Assembly (NCBI RefSeq): GCF_001194135.2
Contig: NC_068982.1
Span: forward strand, 178,513,539 to 178,552,453
DNA length: 38,915 nt
Direction of reading: 5' to 3'
DNA from: Octopus bimaculoides
Taxonomy: Eukaryota
Of the stretch, positions 3,276-38,759 are shown in pieces (the first letter of the stretch is position 1; each line of letters begins with the position of its first letter). Under the pieces are notes generated by a model that did not search any database, was not told where the DNA came from, and saw only the letters and a list, made by a program, of their open reading frames with translations. Both the position numbers and the translations under genes were made by a program.

Positions 3276-3429
3276 NNNNNNNNNNNNNNNNNNNNNNNNN
3301 NNNNNNNNNNNNNNNNNNNNNNNNNNNNNNNNNNNNNNNNNNNNNNNNNNNNNNNNNNNNNNNNNNNNNNNNNNNNNNNNNNNNNNNNNNNNNNNNNNNN
3401 NNNNNNNNNNNNNNNNNNNNNNNNNNNNN
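3276..3429. other. Assembly gap (others: 7193-7725, 10656-10812, 20727-21087, 21501-21849, 36621-36642, 37503-37781)
   Basis: Runs of N, nearly all abutting (TA)n or (CA)n tracts. Confidence 0.99.
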
Positions 3430-6400: not shown

Positions 6401-7746
6401 TAACAACAAAAAGAAATAGTTTAGAGGATTGTAAAGGGAATGAAGGGATATGTGGGAGTAATAGGCAAACGTAGGTGGCGAAATTGTATGATTTTTAGAA
6501 GTATGAAAGGCCAAAGTAACCTATATATATCTTTCATTAAGAATATAGAATAAACATTCTAAATTCCCTTTATACTAATAGAAAATGATACGTGGCTGCT
6601 AGTTAGATGTTTGTGTTTTTAACCAGAACGTAGGTTAATTCATATAATTGAACGTGCCTTTAAAAAGTTTCAACTAATTTCTAATATATTCCTGTACAGT
6701 TAACATAGAGTAAGAATGTATCTTATTTTTATCAATTTAGCAATAAATTCTAAATTGTTCCGGTATCTTTGGGAGCCATATACATATAATATCTTGTCCG
6801 ACCAGATATAAGGTCAAACTAACCAGTATAAATCCTTCACAACTCTTCTCTACTCTGAACAAAGGGCTAGTCTCAGAGTACATAGAGTTGTCTTTTGATA
6901 TAATAAATATATATAATAAATATATCTATCCACTCTACCCAACTTATTAAGTTCTATATCAGATATTGCTTGCACTATGTAGACCCAATACGTTACATCT
7001 GTTACATTACTACATATATACACATACACATCTACAGGCGTGTGTATGTCTAAACAAGTATACATCAACCGTCTGGCAAAACACGTGATTGTCACTATTG
7101 ATATCGTAAACATATTTGTTTATCTATATTTATCTATGTTCTATGTTCTATATGTATATACACACACATCCATACAAGCCTAATATATATATNNNNNNNN
7201 NNNNNNNNNNNNNNNNNNNNNNNNNNNNNNNNNNNNNNNNNNNNNNNNNNNNNNNNNNNNNNNNNNNNNNNNNNNNNNNNNNNNNNNNNNNNNNNNNNNN
7301 NNNNNNNNNNNNNNNNNNNNNNNNNNNNNNNNNNNNNNNNNNNNNNNNNNNNNNNNNNNNNNNNNNNNNNNNNNNNNNNNNNNNNNNNNNNNNNNNNNNN
7401 NNNNNNNNNNNNNNNNNNNNNNNNNNNNNNNNNNNNNNNNNNNNNNNNNNNNNNNNNNNNNNNNNNNNNNNNNNNNNNNNNNNNNNNNNNNNNNNNNNNN
7501 NNNNNNNNNNNNNNNNNNNNNNNNNNNNNNNNNNNNNNNNNNNNNNNNNNNNNNNNNNNNNNNNNNNNNNNNNNNNNNNNNNNNNNNNNNNNNNNNNNNN
7601 NNNNNNNNNNNNNNNNNNNNNNNNNNNNNNNNNNNNNNNNNNNNNNNNNNNNNNNNNNNNNNNNNNNNNNNNNNNNNNNNNNNNNNNNNNNNNNNNNNNN
7701 NNNNNNNNNNNNNNNNNNNNNNNNNTGTATATATAAATGTACATGC

Positions 7747-8896: not shown

Positions 8897-10821
8897 TCTT
8901 TAATTCGATTACAAGTTTCCTTAAAATGTATGGTATCCTTTCTACAGATATTAAAAAATCGATGATTCTAAACAAAAACTTTTGTTTTAATTACTTAATT
9001 AGAGGAGGTACAGCGTGCATGATTCTTTTTAGAGATTTTTCTTAGAGAGAAAGTTATCCTAAAATGTACAGAAAGACGTTCTAACTGAACTATATTCCGA
9101 TTCTGCTATTTGAAACCAGGATACTTCACTTTCGCAACTAATTGTCAAGACTTCTCATGTTTCTATAGACGCTATAATTAAAAAAGAATAACTTTGAATA
9201 TTACAATTTAATTGAATGAGGTACCGAAATATTTCATTTGATCAAATATCAAAGATTTTATTACATATTGATACATGATTCCTCAATACATGTCACCATT
9301 TCAACGAGCACTTATATTTTAACTAGAAGTTTTAGCGAAAAATACGACGCATTTCAACATGTTTTTATAATTTTTCTTGTAGTAACTATTTTTTCATTTG
9401 CCTCGGCGGAATCTCTGGTTATCATCATTCAACGTGTTAATATTACGTGAATATGAATGGTATATACAGTTAAACTGATGGTGGATTTTCGAAAACCATC
9501 AGTGAAATGAGTGTGATTGAGAATTAAAACAAGTTGAATAATAGCCGACAAGTAAATGAGCAATGTGTAGAAGACAGGAATTAAACTTTTAACTTGTACA
9601 TCTAGAAAATAACTTTATAATATCTTCTGATGTTTTTTTGTTAACGAGTTAACATTTCATCTATCACATTTATCTTCAGCTTCATACATACACATACACA
9701 CATATTTTGCATACACGCACGCATGCACGAACGCATTCACGCACGCACGCACACACACATATACACACACACACACAAACACACACGCACGCACACACAC
9801 ACACATACACATACAGTGCATGGAGAGGGATGTACAGAAAATCTAACATGTTATATTGTAAAATATTGCTCATTGACTTTTGCTTGAAAATCAATATAAC
9901 GATAAATTCCAAAATATAAAGCACCATGTTTTACAACTGCTGCGTATTACTCCTGCAAACCCTCGATAAATTTCCCATCGATTCCACACTAGATACCTTC
10001 ACTAGTTTTTCTAACACTGAATTTCTATGATACTTTTCTTTGAACGATTTTTCTTTGAACGAGCATTAACCTGCTTGTGTTCAAGTTGGATTACAACTGA
10101 GATCGACACTACGTTTCCACATTCTGTTAACTACACACCAACCACTAAAATGTCATAAAAGGTGTACATTCTTTCTCCATTTCTAGAAAGACATTTCTAA
10201 TATCATTCAAATAAATTAAAAATTAAATTTTTTGAATGATTTCATAATTTAATTTCAGTTTATATAAATGCAATACGCAATGGATTTACACAATTTATCA
10301 GGATTTGTATTATTTATTAGATTCGTATTTTTATTGCTAGGGCTATTTTTATACATGCATATGATGTTATAGCAACAGTACAAGAAATAGTGAAACTTTG
10401 ATAATTACTGGTGCAAGCATTAGGAAGATTTTCGATGAAGTTTAAATCGCTTGTGTGTTTATCAAAGATATGGTATATCGTATATCGTATATCAAAGATA
10501 TCATACAGAGGAAAGTACTTTAATGTATGCTAAAAGCAAACTTTGCAAGAGTCATGACGCAATTTGAAAACAGTTACATATTAAAAACATGAAAATCCCA
10601 AATTTATAACGACTTTGAAACATTATACAGTCTCTATGAGTAAGCTGTATGCAGCNNNNNNNNNNNNNNNNNNNNNNNNNNNNNNNNNNNNNNNNNNNNN
10701 NNNNNNNNNNNNNNNNNNNNNNNNNNNNNNNNNNNNNNNNNNNNNNNNNNNNNNNNNNNNNNNNNNNNNNNNNNNNNNNNNNNNNNNNNNNNNNNNNNNN
10801 NNNNNNNNNNNNATATATATA

Positions 10822-11490: not shown

Positions 11491-11661
11491 GGGAATTCAG
11501 TTAGAGAGTAATGGAATGTGGATGGGCTTAGATTCTGCACTAGGAAAGAGGAGAATGGGCTTTGTTTTTAATTTAGTATTGGGAATATATGAGATCTCGT
11601 GGAAGCTGTTATTCCGGAGTGTCTGTTTATTGTACTGCGAATGATTATTACACATGCATAA

Positions 11662-11877
11662 GGCGGTGAGCTGGCTGAATCATTAGCGCGCTCGACGAAG
11701 TGATTAGCCGTATTTCGCCCGTCGCTATATTCTGAGTTCAAATTCCGCCGAGTTCGACTTTACCTTTCATCCTTTCGGGTTCGATAAAATAAGTACCAGT
11801 TGAACACTGGGGTCGATGAAATCGACTCATCTCCTCACCAAAAATTGCTGCCATTGAGGCAAAATTTGAAACCATTA
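11662..11877 (+). mobile_element. tRNA-derived SINE (octopus OK-like family)
   Basis: GGCGGTGAGCTGGC head, B box GAGTTCAAATTCC, and conserved body CCTTTCATCCTTTCGGGTTCGATAAAATAAGTACCAG. Homologous copies occur at 24088, 24310, 27366 and 27910. Confidence 0.9.
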
Positions 11878-12102
11878 TCACAGATGTCCTCATTAGCTGA
11901 TTGGTTAGAAATCCTGATAGAAACACCAGTGATAATGCTATTATAGCAAATCTAGAGTGATTAGACAAGATATTGACATATTGTATTGATTGTTTCGGTT
12001 TATAGAAAGGGTAATATAGGTTCGTATCATGTCAAAGTTCACATCTAAGATGTTAGTTAATTTAGTGCTATTTTCGAATGAGATAATTTATAGATGGATT
12101 TC

Positions 12103-20726: not shown

Positions 20727-21087
20727 NNNNNNNNNNNNNNNNNNNNNNNNNNNNNNNNNNNNNNNNNNNNNNNNNNNNNNNNNNNNNNNNNNNNNNNNNN
20801 NNNNNNNNNNNNNNNNNNNNNNNNNNNNNNNNNNNNNNNNNNNNNNNNNNNNNNNNNNNNNNNNNNNNNNNNNNNNNNNNNNNNNNNNNNNNNNNNNNNN
20901 NNNNNNNNNNNNNNNNNNNNNNNNNNNNNNNNNNNNNNNNNNNNNNNNNNNNNNNNNNNNNNNNNNNNNNNNNNNNNNNNNNNNNNNNNNNNNNNNNNNN
21001 NNNNNNNNNNNNNNNNNNNNNNNNNNNNNNNNNNNNNNNNNNNNNNNNNNNNNNNNNNNNNNNNNNNNNNNNNNNNNNNNNNNNNNN

Positions 21088-21500: not shown

Positions 21501-21887
21501 NNNNNNNNNNNNNNNNNNNNNNNNNNNNNNNNNNNNNNNNNNNNNNNNNNNNNNNNNNNNNNNNNNNNNNNNNNNNNNNNNNNNNNNNNNNNNNNNNNNN
21601 NNNNNNNNNNNNNNNNNNNNNNNNNNNNNNNNNNNNNNNNNNNNNNNNNNNNNNNNNNNNNNNNNNNNNNNNNNNNNNNNNNNNNNNNNNNNNNNNNNNN
21701 NNNNNNNNNNNNNNNNNNNNNNNNNNNNNNNNNNNNNNNNNNNNNNNNNNNNNNNNNNNNNNNNNNNNNNNNNNNNNNNNNNNNNNNNNNNNNNNNNNNN
21801 NNNNNNNNNNNNNNNNNNNNNNNNNNNNNNNNNNNNNNNNNNNNNNNNNGTGTGTGTGTATAGCACAGTGGAAGTCTCATCGTATTT

Positions 21888-22426: not shown

Positions 22427-24087
22427 TTATGATCAAGGCTTTGAAGGATCTTCAAAAGCTAGAGATCTTTCTAATTCCATGATACAGTTAAATAATTCGT
22501 ACAGTTTCGTGAAAGGTTTCAAGTATTCTTCTTATTTTCAAAACAAATGCTATTCCGTGATTTTGTTTCATTGCTAGCGTCAGATTATCTTAGATGTATA
22601 ACAAGCACAGACACTGTTACTTTATTGCTTCAAGTTTCCTTTTCCTGTCGGATAAGATTCAAAGGATTCATGATCGCTTTCAAACTTAGAATAATTATCG
22701 TCAAATCAAACTGTTTGTTGACAGCTGTTATGTTTGAAACAAAACAGTATAAGAATGCTTCATTATTTGTAAAAGTTCTGATAAAGGAACCATAATTGAA
22801 AAGATGCTGCAAACAATACGACTATGTGTGAAATATGTTAAACAAATATTTGTGAAACATTTCAATTGTAGTGAGTCAATCAACCTTATTCCTCATAGCT
22901 GACAATGCTTATTTCGAATGGCTTTTGAGAATGAAACGTGGGTGATAAAAATAATTAATAAAATCGATATCACTAAACAAACCAATACATTATGTAATTG
23001 ACGAAGAAAACCTAACGATCTATGAAACAAGTTTCATTGCAGAGGAACCAGATAGTTTAAAAATCATGAATGCCGAGACAATTAATAATTATTTCGTATT
23101 CTATTGCTTAAAACAAAAGATTGTTGAGATATAAACAAACATAAAAGTGACAAGAAAAGCTTTAATACTAATGATTACTGCTAATGAAGATGATGATAAT
23201 TATGATGATGATGATAGTGATGATGATGATGGTGACTATAATCACGGTAATGAGATGACAACAACAATAACAATATAGACAACATCAAGAGGATAACAAA
23301 TCGTAGCATGACATCGATTGATTATAGAGAGGCAATCGATACTGGAGTCACTCTATATAAATAAAACAGTTCCAGTTCTAAAATTGTATATCGACTATAC
23401 CATTTCAAAATGAAAAGCAAGCCTTTTACTAGAAAGCAAAGAGAATAATGATTAAAACTAACTCAATATCTCAAAAGAGAAAGCTAGCCGGAGGGCTTCC
23501 TATTTTCTCTACACTTATTCAAACCCTATTAAGAAAATCATTAAACCAAAAATGTTTATAAATGTTGCAAAAATTCTAAAGCATTATCTTTATGATGTAT
23601 GCTTAAAACTTTTGACAAGGAACAATATTTGACTGGAAAATCTACTAAAATTTGCTTATGAATTCAGCCAGACATTGCTCTGTATTGAACTAGATTAATG
23701 GACCAAATCTTCTATAAAAGTAAACAAATTAACTAAACTGAGAACAGTAAATTAAATCCAGACACTGAAATGAAAATGCAACTTGAAAAGCTATATTTAA
23801 AGAAAGAATAGATAACAAACTAGGAGCTGATTACATAAGAAAAGTAATAGAATAAGTAAAATAGCAATAAACAAACGACTAAAAAATAAATGGAACTCCA
23901 GCATTTACTACAGAAACACTGGAGTGAAAAAATACTTCTTTGCAAGACTCTACAGAACTGCAATAAGTCAGCAATATATCCTACGAGGGAAAATTACTGA
24001 AATAAAAAGAAGAAACTGAATGTCTGACTTTAGTTGCACACGATGTGCAGAAATATTTAGCTCGTTTAATCCAAAAACAGAATATAC

Positions 24088-24299
24088 TAATAGTTTCAAA
24101 TTTTGGCACAAGGCCAGCAAATTTCGGTGAGGAAGTCGATTACATCGACTCTTGTGCTCAAACTGGTACATATTTTATCGACCTTGAAAGGATGAAAGGT
24201 ACAGTCGACCTAGGTGGAATTTGGGCTCAGAAGGTAAAGATGGACGAAATGCCTCTAAGCATTTTTCTCGGTGTGCTAATGATTCTGCCAGTCGCTTCC
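24088..24299 (-). mobile_element. OK-like SINE
   Basis: Reverse complement of the 11662-11877 family from head to tail. Confidence 0.85.
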
Positions 24300-24309
24300 T
24301 TAAAGCAGA

Positions 24310-24458
24310 TTAATAATCCTTTCTACTGGAGGCACAGGCCTTCAGATTTGTGGGGGAGGGAAGTAGTTGATTACATCGATCCCAGTGTTTCATTGGTACT
24401 TAATTTATCGACCCCGAAAGGATGAAAGCCGTGCTAACGGCTCTGCCAGATCGTCGCC
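24310..24458 (-). mobile_element. OK-like SINE with internal deletion and 10-bp target site duplication
   Basis: Flanked by TTAAAGCAGA at 24300-24309 and 24459-24468. It lacks about 70 bp containing the B box (junction GATGAAAG|CCGTGCTAACG). Confidence 0.8.
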
Positions 24459-26522: not shown

Positions 26523-26527
26523 TAATT

Positions 26528-27126
26528 TATAGGTGAAAGTATGTCATCTTGGAAAATGCCACAGTTGATATTAATACTGTTTGAAGTCAGTACTCGATTA
26601 GAGTGGTATAGCTGGAAGTTCGTATTCCTGACTGACATGTGCTTCAGGAAGTTTGAAATTACTGGAGAAATTTTAAAGATGTCTAGCGATTTTAAGATCT
26701 ATGAATGCGGTATGCTGTCAAAGGCCTCTTTATAATCATTCTGTGCGGAACTCAAATTTATGCATTTGTTATGAGAGTTCTCAAGGATCATGCGATTAAT
26801 TAAGTGTTGATCTTTTTGATCAATGGGGAAAATATCGTTCTGATCCATAAATGGGTATGTTTTCTCCACGAGGAAGGATGTTAAAATTTTATACGTGGCA
26901 GATAGACAGGTTATGGGCCGATGGATTTGGGGAAATTTGGTTTCATTATTCTTTGGAAGTAGGTAAGAATAACCACTTGTTAACCACTTGTTAACCACTT
27001 GTTAACCAATTAGGTGTTTTCTTAGGATCTCTCATAATTTCATTGAATAGCTGAAATAACTTTTCGTGTGTGCATGGGAGCGATGCGAGTCGGATATTCG
27101 GCACCCTATCTTTACCAGGGGATTTT
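26528..27126 (-). mobile_element. Second R4/Dong-like LINE reverse transcriptase fragment (pseudogenised)
   Basis: KSPGKDRVPN...TPNWLT, then WLTSGYSYLLPKNNETKFPQIHRPITCLSATYKILTSFL...DYKEAFDSIPHS*ILKSLDIFKISPVISNFLK...NINCGIFQDDILSP. It carries one stop, a deletion and an 11-bp tandem expansion. Confidence 0.9.
26970..27008. repeat. 11-bp tandem repeat (TAACCACTTGT) x3.5
   Basis: Exact copies at 26970, 26981 and 26992, with a partial copy at 27003. Confidence 0.95.
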
Positions 27127-27331: not shown

Positions 27332-27365
27332 TTATTATTATTATTATTATTATTGTTGTTGTTTA

Positions 27366-27580
27366 GACAGCGAACTGGCAGAATCGTTAGCATGTCGGAC
27401 AAAAGGCTTAGTAGAATTTCTTCCTGTTATTTACGTTTTTTGTTCAAATGTCGACGTGTCAACTTTGCATTTCATCCTTTCAGGATTGACAAAACAAAGT
27501 ACCAATAAAGTACTGGAGTCGTTGAATTCGACTAACCACCTCCCACTAAAATTACTGGCATTGTGCTCAAATTAGAAAGA
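27366..27580 (+). mobile_element. Diverged OK-like SINE
   Basis: GAACTGGCAGAATCGTTAGCA head and CTTTGCATTTCATCCTTTCAGG body, homologous to 11662-11877. Confidence 0.8.
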
Positions 27581-27909
27581 GTAGGTATCGTCACAATCGT
27601 TATCATCGTCCCCGTCGTCGTCATCGTCATCATCATCATCATCATCACTGAGTGAGAGAGTAGCGCATGCCATCAAAGTGACACTGGGGTAAAATATATG
27701 AAACCTAATGAAAAATTAATCAAATATAGTGAAATCAAGTATAGTGAAAATGAAATAATCAGGATCTAGAATATAAAATTAAAGGTAGCATCAATGATAC
27801 TTAGAACACTAAATATGATAAAAATCATATCAAGGTTCATAACTTTACACACAGCCCAAAACATAGATCTTTTATGAATAACACATATCCTATGACGCGG
27901 TTGAATATC

Positions 27910-28087
27910 GGTTGCAAATTTTGACACAATGTCAGCAATCTCGAAAGAGAGGTAAGTCGATTACATCGACCCCAGTACTCAACTGGTACATATTTTATCG
28001 ACTCCGAAAAGACAAAAGGCAAAATCGACCGTGGCGGAATTTGAACTCATTTCGTCCGGTGTACTAACGATTCTGCCAGCAACCACC
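27910..28087 (-). mobile_element. OK-like SINE with internal deletion
   Basis: Reverse complement of the family; deletion junction GAACTCA|TTTCGTCCGG. Confidence 0.85.
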
Positions 28088-31068: not shown

Positions 31069-31712
31069 ATTTATATATATTTATTTACAGTTGACATAGT
31101 AAATGACTCCAGCGTATACTCACAAAGACCTTCCCCTAACCACCTTTAATGTTACCAATTTTTCCCCTACTCTTCACCCTCTCCTTTTCTGTACTGTGAT
31201 TCTCTTTCTTAACAACTTTAGATATTTTGCTGCACCCATATTTTATTTCTTCACAACTATGCTTTTTGTTTTTTGTTCTCTCACTCTGTGCTTTCCACTC
31301 ATTTTCGATCAAACTTCCTGATGTTAACCTGGAATCCCTTAATAACAGTATAAGCTTCATTTAACTAAGGTATCTTCGGCCTGATAAATAGCTAGTGGAG
31401 TACACCTCAAATAATTACTACTTCCGAGGTTCTGCTAGTTAGGAAACATATTTAACTTGGATTTTACTTGCTCCATTCCCTAAATTTTGATTTTTATTCA
31501 TATACATAGCAACCCCAATTACTAAACGTGAACTATAAATTAATTTTTTAGTTTATCGTACTTCGAGACGGGAAAAATCTATAACCTTCTACACCAATAA
31601 ATCTCAATTGTTCCAGAAAGTTGTTTTTTATACCTTCAACAGACTGCTCGAAGCTTACTAGCGTACTACATCTGGATCTTTGGATCTTACCTTAACATAT
31701 TATATATATATA

Positions 31713-31764
31713 GTACTACTGATGAGCTTTAATTTCAAGCGAAATTGACTTGCCAATTTAGTAC
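31713..31764 (+). ncRNA. Type I hammerhead ribozyme motif (complete catalytic core)
   Basis: Stem I GTACTA (31713-18) / TAGTAC (31759-64); core CTGATGA (31719-25); stem II GCTT/AAGC with loop TAATTTC; GAA (31741-43); stem III ATTG/CAAT with loop ACTTGC. The NUH triplet is AUU, with predicted cleavage after 31758. All conserved core positions and all three helices are present without mismatch. Confidence 0.85.
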
Positions 31765-31945
31765 CCTCGCTATCGAGCCGTTTACTCTTTCTCAGTACAT
31801 AGACTTGTGCTATGTTTGTGGCTATAAGAGTCTTTGACTCTTATTTCTAGCAATGTAGGTGCTACAATGCACCATCAGTCACTATTAGTGACAATTGAAT
31901 TCTTCGTTTTTGGTTTTATATTGCGTCTAACCACCTTTATTATTT

Positions 31946-33124
31946 ATATATTTTAATATCCTTCTATACGTTGGATATATAGATTTCACAATGACTCTCG
32001 TCACATCATCTCAACCTTTCAGATTTACTTCCTAGGGAAGTTTAATATTTCTTCCGTTTGTTTCCTCTTTCTTGTACTGCTACGCTTAGGTTCAACTTCT
32101 TGTGGTGCTTGAACATCAAAGGTGTAGTAGGGCATTCCATGAGTATCTTTTCTTTCTTGATTTTGGGTGATATGGCGTAGTAGGGATGTGTTCAATTGTG
32201 TACATATTGCAAAAATGTTAAAACTCCTCATACACTGCATACCGTTATCTGATACTACGGCGTCCGGGACACCATATCTTGCAAGACGTTCATGAAGAAA
32301 TTCTATTGTTACCTTTGAGGTTGGTTTCCTACATCTACATATTTCGGCCACTTAGTATAACTATCTACTACAATCAGGTAATACACACCATTTATTGGTC
32401 TAGCAAAATCTATATGAAGCATGTTCTATGGACTGTCGGTTTTAGGCCACGGTTGGAATTTTACCGGTGGTGACTTGTTTGGAGGGGCACAGCCTGTGCA
32501 GGAATTCACCGGCACTTCAATGTACGCCAATATATGTAACTTTAGTTCTCTTATTCATTAATGATTTCATTCTCGAAATCCTTTAATAAACACTGTTGTA
32601 GTACGACTGGCACTACGGCTCTTTGTGCATACATCAACACATTATCACACAGTGAGAAATGGTTCGCATTTGTGTTGCACATGTTTTTGTTTTCTTTAGT
32701 CTCCAGTGTTTATCGCTCTCCGATTTTGATTTTATGTCTGGTAACGTAACTAGCAGTTCACGCACAAAATATTTTATATTTAATTTTCCGCTCGCAAAAC
32801 GGCAATCACAGTATCTTCGAATGGTTCCGCATTTTTTGAAATCGGTCTTGATAGACAACCCGCATGACTTAATTTTTTTATATTCTTCTATACGTTGCAT
32901 ATCCAGATTTCACGAAACGAGGATAAACACAACTGCCTTCACACGACGCGACGTACTTTAAATTACTCCACTAGACACACTTCAATAAATAGGCTACTTC
33001 AATAAATGCAAATTCTCAACGAACTCAACGTCTTCTCTCATCTCAACCCATACGCTACTTTCTATAAGAGTTCAGCTAGTCCATTTCTCCCAATCCCACA
33101 GGGGTGTCAATGACTCTCGCCATA
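31946..33124 (-). mobile_element. Internally deleted Ty3/Gypsy LTR retrotransposon with LTR remnants
   Basis: Pol remnants: LSHAGCLSRPI (GHAD.LSR-like), VRELLVTLPDIK, LCDNVLMYAQRAVVP, SRMKSLM, and integrase core EFLHERLARYGVPDAVVSDNG. LTR-like direct matches: 31989-32005 vs 33108-33124 (15/17) and 31961-31989 vs 32885-32913 (26/29). Confidence 0.8.
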
Positions 33125-33225
<101 letters not shown>

Positions 33226-35100: not shown

Positions 35101-35653
35101 GGAATCAATGTCTCTGTAAAAGCGCGTTTTCTTAAGAAGATTTTAAAACATTTTCTTTTAAGATCTGAAATGAAAAGACGGATTTCAATTATGACGCATC
35201 ATAGTTGAATATAATCGAGAAGGAACATTGCACCAATATGAACCATCATGTTTACACCAACCATCAAGTCTCGACAAGCATTATAGTTAATATAGTGAAG
35301 AAGCAATTTTGTACTAATATCAATAGTAAAACATACATCATACACTTAGCCTGAATTTATGGAAAAGCTACAAAATGGTAAGGTAGCAAAAAGATATTTA
35401 GTTGGATACTGGTATATAATTGTTTGCGGTCTATAGAGAGGCACTTACGTGTATATCTAAGAGGACCCCGGAAAGTAAAATTGATGGAAGTGAAAGGTTG
35501 TTTTTTTCTTATGGGTGTGATCTAATTTTCTGCTCTTGGCAAGAACAAGAAATGCAACGATATCAGTGGTTTTAGGACAAATATAGTATATGTGAGTGTT
35601 GTGTGTATTGATGTATGCATATCTTAGTGTCTGCGTTTAGACGTTTATACTGG

Positions 35654-35749
35654 TTTATACTTGCTATACGTTTATACTTGCTATACGTTTATACTTGCTA
35701 TACGTTTATACTTGCTATACGTTTATACTTGCTATACGTTTATACTTGC
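35654..35749. repeat. 17-bp minisatellite (TTTATACTTGCTATACG) x5.6
   Basis: Five exact units plus an 11-bp partial unit. Confidence 0.97.
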
Positions 35750-36620: not shown

Positions 36621-36929
36621 NNNNNNNNNNNNNNNNNNNNNNATATGTATATATGTATTTATGTGTGAATACATATATTCACACATAGAATAGGTACTGG
36701 GCTTATATATATATATATATATATATATACAACGTGCGTAATGAAGCTGTCAAAATACCTTTACCTTGTTTTTTTGTGTGTTTATTTCAACATTATGTAA
36801 CTCCTGTTACCCCGCAGTATCATATCTGTATCTATTCTATTTTTTATAACACGCATTATACGTGTACGAAAGTTTAACTTGCATGATTTGACAAAATACT
36901 GACCATATGTTTCTATATCTATATGTATA

Positions 36930-37001: not shown

Positions 37002-38759
37002 TTATCTATCGATCTATCTATACACACACGCGTATAAAAAGAAGCTTTAACATGTACATTTACCAAACACAAATGATAATGCTAACAGAATATTTTAATA
37101 AGGGACGAGAACACCTGATAAAATGCATAGCTGACACTTCTCAGAGTGACTTTAAAAATAGTTAATAATTTAGAGGTATCTTATCTCTTCTAGACAATCT
37201 ATCTATCCATTTCAATAAATTGATTAAATTTAAGATTTTTAATTAATAAACTTCTGTATTAGACGAGTGGTGTCTGAGACAAATGTACTTAAACTGATTC
37301 CACCATTCCAACTTTTTCCATTATCTATAGATAAGTTTCATGAAAGTATTTATAAGTGCTTCTTGTTCGTTAAATAACGATATTTATTAAGAATTTCAAC
37401 TGTTTTTCATACATTATGTTTATTTCATTTCAGTTATATGTCTAAATATACTGTTTTTATATACACACATATATGTATATATATATGTATATGTATATAT
37501 ATNNNNNNNNNNNNNNNNNNNNNNNNNNNNNNNNNNNNNNNNNNNNNNNNNNNNNNNNNNNNNNNNNNNNNNNNNNNNNNNNNNNNNNNNNNNNNNNNNN
37601 NNNNNNNNNNNNNNNNNNNNNNNNNNNNNNNNNNNNNNNNNNNNNNNNNNNNNNNNNNNNNNNNNNNNNNNNNNNNNNNNNNNNNNNNNNNNNNNNNNNN
37701 NNNNNNNNNNNNNNNNNNNNNNNNNNNNNNNNNNNNNNNNNNNNNNNNNNNNNNNNNNNNNNNNNNNNNNNNNNNNNNNNNATATATATAACTATATATA
37801 TATATATATACATACCCAAGTGTTATTAGCCTCTCCAGTTCAGAGTTAGGATATAGTATAAGTAATTTCGTATTAATATGTTGTTAGCTTTTGATCTCGA
37901 CATTAATGTTCTGTGTGGCTGATAACTGTAAGAAATTTCTATCACAAAATTAAATCTTTCATTGGATATAAGAGGAGAATGTATCAGAGGTAATAAATAA
38001 TTTTCTCAACATATACATACGCACAGATATATGCATGCATCACACCGATTCAAATACATACATACGCGCACCCTCATGCACACATACTTGTACTTTTGCT
38101 TGTAACTTGTGTTTGATTCACTTTAAGTTAAAGAGATCACCTTGAGTCAAGTTAATGCATTTATTGTTTAAGTTTTCTATAATTCCTAATACTTCTCTGT
38201 ATACTTGGTGGTTGATAAAAATCACGAGTGGAATTGCTTCTAGCAGTCTAAATAACGTATTTCCATATTATCAGAGGTATATAAATAACTAATTGTTAAA
38301 CGAAAAATAATAAAAATTGTGAAAATGCCAATGTCTGTTCTGTTAGCTTCTAGAAGGCTTGTAACACAATGAAGTTCGTAGTGTTTGTTGAAAAAAAAAT
38401 CAACAACAAAAACTATTATGTATGTTTTTATAAAGTTTGAATTAGCGCACAAATTGAATTTCTAAACTTGCGAAGACTTAACTAGATAGAACAGAACAAT
38501 TCGGAAACACTCATCAATCACAGAAACACTCTTGAAGCTCTGTAATCATTCAAAGAGATATAATTTGCTTTTTTTAAAGACATTTCTATATATTTTGATT
38601 AAATTTCCAAATATTTCTAGAAGAAATCACTAAAATGTGTGAAATAAAATAGTTTCTTAAATATAAAGTTAACATAAAGTCACCAACAGTGCACACAACC
38701 TCTGCTTGTAGAGAGTTGGACCCAGCTCTGAGATGTTGGTTCTACGTTCTTCCGTCACT

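Follow-up and report, generated by a model that had tools for sequence, protein, structure and literature searches.

The window analysed here is a stretch of 38,915 nt from the genome of Octopus bimaculoides (contig NC_068982.1), with 32% GC and dozens of microsatellites. It contains a type I hammerhead motif of 52 nt at 31713-31764 on the plus strand, which was located by our own descriptor scan of the window. The descriptor looks for the CUGAUGA core and the GAAA box, each followed by a hairpin, the second of these closed by A15.1-U16.1, then for any residue but G at position 17, and finally for a helix I that closes the motif. The motif opens a short interspersed repeat, which is preceded by a (TA)n tract and followed by retroelement remains. 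The features of the locus are given below in window coordinates; the paralogue referred to is a second copy of the repeat in O. bimaculoides.

31697 to 31712, no strand assigned: (TA)n tract, (TA)8, directly 5' of the repeat unit, read from the sequence
31713 to 31950, plus strand: ~240-nt interspersed repeat unit with the hammerhead motif at its 5' end and the 3' end ...CCACCUUUAUUAUUUAUAUA, recognised from blastn paralogues
31713 to 31718, plus strand: 5' strand of helix I (GUACUA), which is also the 5' limit of paralogue homology
31719 to 31725, plus strand: core box C3-U4-G5-A6-U7-G8-A9 (CUGAUGA), which is CCAAUGA in the paralogue
31726 to 31740, plus strand: helix II, GCUU/AAGC, with the closing pair G10.1-C11.1, from the descriptor scan
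31730 to 31736, plus strand: 7-nt loop of helix II, UAAUUUC, identical in both copies
31741 to 31743, plus strand: core G12-A13-A14 (GAA), with G12 replaced by A in the paralogue
31744 to 31757, plus strand: helix III, AUUG/CAAU, with the 6-nt loop ACUUGC; A15.1 is 31744 and U16.1 is 31757
31758, plus strand: H17, a U, giving the cleavage triplet AUU; C in the paralogue, giving AUC
31759 to 31764, plus strand: 3' strand of helix I (UAGUAC), with three compensated pairs relative to the paralogue (GCAUCA/UGAUGC)
31951 to 32003, minus strand: fragment of a ~270-nt repeat, 'repA', abutting the 3' end of the unit; a fuller copy lies at 32873-33126
32157 to 32878, minus strand: decayed remains of a Gypsy/BEL-like pol with frameshifts, covering the zinc finger and core of the integrase, from protein and DNA homology

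Divided into its segments, the motif reads GTACTA-CTGATGA-GCTT-TAATTTC-AAGC-GAA-ATTG-ACTTGC-CAAT-T-TAGTAC. Helices I, II and III comprise 6, 4 and 4 bp, all Watson-Crick, including the pairs A31744-U31757 and G31726-C31740, with U31758 at position 17. The hammerhead core (C3 U4 G5 A6 N7 G8 A9 ... G12 A13 A14) is complete. As both free ends lie in helix I, the motif is of type I, and since H17 is U31758, the predicted scissile bond is 31758|31759. A preliminary description of this DNA had reported a complete hammerhead at these positions and predicted a cut after 31758. The independent descriptor scan reproduced the motif to the base, and the predicted cut agrees with the position of H17 read from the sequence. 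The same description called the ribozyme intact, a word that holds for the match to the consensus and for nothing beyond it. No second hammerhead was found on either strand of the window at strict or very lax descriptor settings. The window also holds no dimeric or circle-forming pair of hammerhead sites, and a dimeric reading was rejected for want of a second copy.

The repeat unit headed by the motif is 238 nt long and AT-rich (35.7% GC). In the aligned copies its 5' end lies at most 3 nt from helix I, and its 3' end reads ...CCACCTTNATTATTT(T)ATA. Two copies were found by blastn at another O. bimaculoides locus, L003. Window positions 31722-31951 match L003 15828-15595 at 76% identity (E=5e-39), and 31842-31950 also match L003 16045-15938, a 5'-truncated copy comprising only the last ~105 nt. 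The truncated copy shares the orientation of the full copy and lies shortly upstream of it, at an offset of 343 nt, and the two together carry one hammerhead-like domain in total. (TA)n flanks are common to all copies: TA-rich sequence also stands 3' of the unit in the window, and the full L003 copy ends in (TA)n. The (TA)n tract is likely to be the insertion target of the unit. The preliminary description placed the motif alone in intergenic DNA; this has to be revised, as a ~240-nt repeat begins with the motif and lies beside a decayed integrase.

Searches for additional copies covered the window, other octopus loci, and wider collections. Within the window, neither blastn nor a repeat search detected another copy of the unit, and there is no tandem array. 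Octopus loci L001 and L004 contain no copy, nor do the short Logan contigs L005-L010, while L002, L011 and L012 have no repeats in common with the window and probably come from outside octopus; no further copies were present in ~65 kb of other octopus DNA. Two family-specific exact patterns gave 0 matches against metagenome and viral contigs, and a covariance model of the two copies, run over 175 kb, detected no additional member. With respect to coding capacity, neither a 5.8-billion-cluster search nor an exhaustive representative search found an ORF with homologues in the unit.

Two minor features of the copies may be recorded here. The 87-nt spacer between the truncated and full copies (L003 15851-15937) is without counterpart in the window, and might be a 'tail' extension of the type seen in Penelope-like elements (PLEs) or simply unrelated sequence. 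In the window, CTAACCACCTTTA at 31136 was considered as a second copy and rejected, being a short match only.

The motif would be exceedingly rare in random sequence. There were 0 strict matches in 20 Mb of first-order Markov sequence of the composition of the window, and 6 at the laxest setting. A factorised estimate from 30 Mb of Markov sequence puts the expected number of matches per window, on both strands, between 4e-8 (loops <=10 nt) and 8e-7 (loops <=40 nt); the same estimate gives 0.003-0.06 per 2.7-Gb genome. When a lax descriptor was run over both strands of the ~175 kb of DNA examined, no match appeared besides 31713-31764. We therefore take a random match to be excluded, on these statistics and on the existence of a paralogue with the same fold.

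The Rfam models, proposed earlier as a check on the motif, returned it below threshold. No hammerhead was reported for the whole window at gathering thresholds, nor at E<=10 on 301 nt. When only the 72 nt around the motif were searched, the best covariance-model match was Hammerhead_HH9 (RF02275) at 15.2 bits and E=0.12 against a cut-off of 52, with the motif aligned in the expected register. HH9 is a type I hammerhead of amniote introns, with which the core, helix II (GCUU in the octopus, GCUC in HH9) and the register align. However, HH9 is conserved in amniotes as a single-copy element of introns, whereas the octopus motif belongs to a cephalopod repeat and scores far below the cut-off. Identity with HH9 was rejected, this being merely the best-scoring model. 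As the motif falls short of the Rfam thresholds, the sole curated test of membership, we call it 'hammerhead-like' by consensus and descent, and a candidate rather than a validated ribozyme.

The motif could instead be a pure chance match in non-repetitive DNA, or a self-cleaving site domesticated by the host within a gene transcript; we regard this pair of readings as very improbable. Reviews caution that matches to minimal motifs are often false positives (PMC6155905), and the Rfam score is sub-threshold. Against chance stand an expected rate of no more than 1e-6 per window and the location of the site inside a repeat whose paralogue has the same fold. As for domestication, no exon or gene is recognisable around the motif, and nothing suggests that it is conserved as a single-copy locus. 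The earlier suggestion of a retained self-cleavage site in a host transcript is unsupported, and a host function of the motif is unlikely.

The arrangement of the copies is informative about the strand from which the element was copied. Copies made by reverse transcription typically keep a constant 3' end and are truncated on the 5' side. The L003 pair would accordingly identify the hammerhead-sense strand as the template RNA, on the strength of one example. It is also conceivable that the minus strand provides the functional RNA. The junction would then form a stem-loop domain at the 3' terminus with a (TA)n tail behind it, by analogy with the 3' ends of LINEs and SINEs that are recognised by their reverse transcriptase, and the hammerhead would be incidental. 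Watson-Crick covariation of the kind described below is strand-symmetric and would fit either strand. The unit is more structured than its dinucleotide shuffles on the plus strand (z -3.5) and also on the minus strand (z -2.6 to -3.0). The domain is indeed followed by a (TA)n run on the minus strand, and a LINE-type reverse transcriptase remnant is present in the window. Nevertheless, no TA tail follows the domain on the minus strand of the paralogue, and the truncated copy keeps the plus-strand 3' end without the 5' part, as a plus-strand template would predict. A minus-strand RNA would also leave the match to the core on the plus strand as an unexplained coincidence, and we hold it to be quite improbable.

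Further evidence on the family comes from the domain in the full L003 copy (L003:15786-15837, minus strand; hereafter L003a). Its 52-mer aligns with that of the window without gaps and reads GCAUCA-CCAAUGA-GCAU-UAAUUUC-AUGC-AAA-AUUG-GCCUGC-CUAU-C-UGAUGC. Between these two copies (n=2), four pairs are changed on both sides, three in helix I and one in helix II, where the paralogue has GCAU/AUGC, and both copies stay perfectly paired there; in helix III, one pair is broken in the paralogue. When the pairing partners were slid by 1-3 columns as a control, 0-1 compensated pairs remained. The helix II change is a swap of U-A for A-U at positions that are unpaired in a competing hairpin predicted for the window copy, and G12A disrupts that hairpin. 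The covariation therefore backs a hammerhead-type junction and not the minimum free energy (MFE) fold.

Conservation of the core is another matter. L003a has undergone the changes U4C, G5A and G12A, and retains C3, A6, U7, G8, A9, A13, A14, the pairs G10.1-C11.1 and A15.1-U16.1, and a non-G at position 17, amounting to 10 of the 13 diagnostic positions and 8 of the 11 core bases. Lacking U4, G5 and G12, it cannot be a ribozyme. The comparison with homologues that was initially suggested therefore gave a divided answer, with compensated pairs in helices I and II but a core that is not conserved in the one paralogue compared (n=1). As far as two full copies can indicate, the hammerhead-shaped fold appears to be conserved in the family and the catalytic core appears not to be universal. 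That three losses fell in the core and none in the 20 positions of helices I and II is somewhat surprising if the family is hammerhead-bearing.

Such a pattern raises the question of convergence. The family may carry a conserved three-way-junction domain with a non-catalytic role, such as marking the RNA for the enzyme by which the element is copied, and the window copy may have reached the hammerhead core by a few transitions, partly through CpG decay. In favour of this reading, the paralogue retains the helices without the core. The reading also fits the greater divergence of the hammerhead part, which is 71% identical between the copies in a global alignment, compared with 83% for the remaining unit, and the far greater stability of the competing fold. 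At U4-G5, the window has TG and L003a has CA, a difference typically left by the decay of an ancestral CpG; the ancestor would then have read CCGAUGA, with C at position 4, and would not have had a hammerhead core. The same difference could be explained either by such decay from a C4 ancestor or by two transitions in L003a. On the side of descent, two of the three core losses of L003a, and possibly all three, are at CpG sites. CpG depletion in the window is moderate (observed/expected 0.80, with TpG and CpA at ~1.18-1.20). At position 12, the CpG is kept in the window and appears as CpA in L003a, indicating that G12 is ancestral, which counts against convergence. It is also very improbable that both copies of an unrelated junction would agree with the hammerhead in at least 8-10 of 11 core bases and in the exact 7/3/1-nt geometry, and G10.1-C11.1, A15.1-U16.1 and the non-G at 17 are kept even in the paralogue. 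Type I hammerheads are common in animal repeats, which also gives descent a much higher prior; convergence we consider rather unlikely.

A further possibility is that compensatory evolution maintains the junction fold even where the catalytic core has gone. The fold may then do a second job that is separable from cleavage, such as recognition by reverse transcriptase, RNA stability or ligation, with the window copy still being catalytic. We find this improbable. If true, it would provide the first described hammerhead-bearing retroelement family of cephalopods, and a ribozyme fold that outlives its chemistry. Should a fold without core conservation prove to be genome-wide, it would bear on the other roles of the hammerhead fold in retrozyme-like elements.

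Folding predictions moderate the expectation of activity. In the MFE fold of the 52-mer, helix I is retained, while the GAAA box and both other helices, II and III, give way to an 8-bp hairpin.

31729 to 31748, plus strand: competing hairpin UUAAUUUC/GAAAUUGA, from the MFE fold; it sequesters loop 2, G12-A14 and helix III

The MFE is -11.6 kcal/mol compared with -5.0 for the hammerhead fold, so that the competitor is favoured by ~6.6 kcal/mol; in a nearest-neighbour model limited to secondary structure, the hammerhead-constrained ensemble represents ~3e-5 of molecules. Longer flanks leave this preference unchanged. Helix II is transcribed ahead of its competitor hairpin. A stable competitor lowers the expected activity, yet activity is still possible, since tertiary and co-transcriptional effects lie outside the model. 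Helix I ends at the element boundary and is without an internal loop that could contact loop 2, while to loop 2 (UAAUUUC), invariant in both copies, no known contact pattern could be assigned. AUU is among the slower and rarer cleavage triplets under the NUH rule, and this triplet, like helix III with its 4 bp and non-palindromic 6-nt loop, is atypical for animal type I motifs. Because of the AUU triplet, the lack of recognisable loop-loop contacts and the far more stable competing hairpin, the cleavage activity of the window copy is predicted to be weak; it is perhaps weakly cleavage-competent. The case is a cautionary one, in that a motif perfect by consensus may still be a poor ribozyme candidate.

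The surroundings of the unit are dominated by decayed mobile elements, and no tRNA or long ORF is present in the window. A frameshifted integrase of retroviral type runs on the minus strand from 32575 to 32157. Its hand-joined translation matches 'K02A2.6-like' proteins of both O. bimaculoides and O. sinensis at E values as low as 1e-35 and contains the Pfam domain rve, and the DNA of the remnant is 80% identical to L003 (O. bimaculoides) and 73-79% identical to L004 (O. sinensis). The hammerhead motif lies ~400 nt from this Gypsy/BEL-like pol, on the opposite strand. The pol remnant is context and lies outside the ribozyme element. A Pfam search of X-masked six-frame translations of 31-36 kb gave no match, because the frames are too broken.

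Copies of repA are found at 32873-33126 and 31951-32003 of the window, at L003 9681-9949 and 10961-11233, and at L004 15134-15351. They form direct repeats on both sides of the integrase remnant in the window and in O. bimaculoides L003. In O. sinensis, a full repA follows the integrase and just a 27-nt match precedes it. The downstream copy in the window has an internal deletion of ~200 nt. This arrangement suggests that repA and the integrase may together be what extensive deletion has left of an LTR-like or composite element, which was itself copied.

Of 111 non-trivial ORFs from 20-39 kb submitted to Pfam, one matched RVT_1, and none was a GIY-YIG or Penelope-like ORF. The match is a decayed LINE-type reverse transcriptase at 26525-27125 on the minus strand, the sole reverse transcriptase in the window, with SPG.D...L and KAFDSIPH-like motifs. 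Its best relative is a protein from an ENA contig at 44% identity, and it is not Penelope-like; used as a query, the fragment gave three matches, all of them non-octopus. The earlier observation that no PLE ORF adjoins the motif was therefore upheld, the only RVT_1 match among these ORFs being of LINE type.

On balance, we consider it probable that the hammerhead domain was inherited by descent as the 5' end of a ~240-nt non-coding retroposed repeat of octopus. This reading is based on the motif statistics, the membership in a repeat, the compensated junction fold, and the insertion in TA-rich sequence. By analogy with described elements, the window copy is best read as a solo copy of a non-autonomous element resembling retrozymes or Sm-alpha, and the motif is most likely an ordinary relic of ribozyme-carrying retroelements. 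The suggestion of a non-autonomous ribozyme-bearing element in the preliminary description was right in direction, the motif being part of a short non-coding repeat with paralogues, but the full paralogue does not have the ribozyme core. In corals, mussels, flukes and amphibians, type I hammerheads within short repeats number in the thousands. They are common in short AT-rich animal repeats, molluscs included (PMC7229834), and one more copy in so well-documented a class would be unsurprising. Hammerhead repeats of cephalopods were not described in any paper that our literature search retrieved; a survey of PLEs reports only ancient Naiad remnants there, without canonical hammerheads (PMC8557442).

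The mechanism that we propose follows these analogies. A sense transcript from a source locus or from an array would fold the hammerhead and be cut after H17, yielding unit-length RNAs with 5'-OH and 2',3'-cyclic phosphate ends. The RNA of the element would be the hammerhead-sense strand, as the 5'-truncated paralogue with its retained 3' end suggests. In retrozymes, unit RNAs are circularised by the host tRNA ligase and copied to DNA by a retroelement enzyme acting in trans (PMC7229834; bioRxiv 10.64898/2026.07.22.740005), and the octopus copies may likewise have been inserted by a retroelement enzyme supplied in trans. Within a longer RNA, the window copy would permit at most one cut, at 31758|31759, and this would probably be inefficient. 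Having a single site and no neighbouring unit, it can neither free a unit RNA nor close one into a circle by itself.

The closest kinds, judged by analogy, are the non-LTR retrozymes and the Sm-alpha type repeats of Schistosoma, since they share with the octopus unit the ribozyme type, the sizes of helices I and II, the unit size, the GC content and the non-coding nature. In metazoan non-LTR retrozymes, helix I is likewise 6 bp long and helix II 4 bp (Cervera & de la Pena 2020, PMC7229834), an architecture described as 'canonical' for metazoan type I hammerheads (PMC4209133). Their non-coding units of 170-400 nt with low GC (PMC7229834) include the octopus unit in their range (~240 nt, 36%). 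They occur in molluscs, and the mussel hammerheads are also without the classic loop-loop nucleotides (PMC7229834). The differences are that retrozymes are defined by head-to-tail tandem repeats and circular RNAs, whereas the window holds a solo unit and L003 a truncated and a full copy, and that helix III of the octopus motif has 4 bp with a 6-nt loop instead of the usual 1-2 bp.

Sm-alpha, in the account of Ferbeyre et al. 1998 as cited in PMC6155905, is a short non-autonomous retroposon, interspersed or in tandem, with a type I hammerhead on the sense strand. Sm-alpha hammerheads have well-defined tertiary contacts and cleave very fast; no such contacts are recognisable in the octopus motif. 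Unlike Sm-alpha, the octopus unit has no convincing Pol III A and B boxes. The Sj-alpha repeat is another SINE-like hammerhead repeat of Schistosoma comparable to the octopus unit.

Derivation from known Pol III SINE heads was also considered and rejected. For a tRNA-derived SINE, ARAGORN reported nothing and the A/B box look-alikes have two mismatches and wrong positions; T5 and T4 runs inside the unit would stop Pol III. A tRNA- or 5S-derived head is at odds with the lack of a tRNA call and with the size and number of arms.

The hammerheads of PLE pLTRs offer a more distant comparison. They are likewise of type I, linked to retroelement termini, and have a conserved G10.1-C11.1 (PMC4209133; PMC8557442). 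The hammerheads associated with PLEs are reported to vary greatly in sequence and to contain many compensatory changes (Cervera & de la Pena 2014, PMC4209133), and PLEs show a (TA)n insertion bias and partial tandems of truncated and full copies (Craig et al. 2021, PMC8557442). These partial tandems and this bias recall the arrangement at L003 and the (TA)n flanks. In contrast, the 'min-HHRs' of PLEs have almost no helix III, a helix II of 7-8 bp, and a bulge after position 9, none of which is found in the octopus motif. A Penelope pLTR in situ was rejected, given that no reverse transcriptase or GIY-YIG ORF adjoins the motif and that the architecture is unlike that of a min-HHR.

Several other observations were made in the window. 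Positions 31827-31883 on the minus strand weakly resemble SNORD34, a C/D-box snoRNA (16.1 bits against 38, E=2.2); the segment is conserved in all three copies of the unit and holds two short hairpins, and the resemblance is probably a chance match. A repeat of ~200-340 nt has four copies in the window (11657-11878, 24085-24428, 27337-27578 and 27901-28049) and occurs at least 5 times in 20 kb of L003 at 70-83% identity; it is probably one of the abundant SINE-like families of octopus. Seven N gaps are present (3276-3429, 7193-7725, 10656-10812, 20727-21087, 21501-21849, 36621-36642 and 37503-37781). Most are bordered by dinucleotide microsatellites and therefore look like assembly breaks at simple repeats, and the long 'ORFs' that span them are artefacts. 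Finally, a perfect 17-nt tandem repeat, GTTTATACTTGCTATAC x 5.7, occupies 35653-35749 at 100% identity and is unusually clean amid the surrounding decay.
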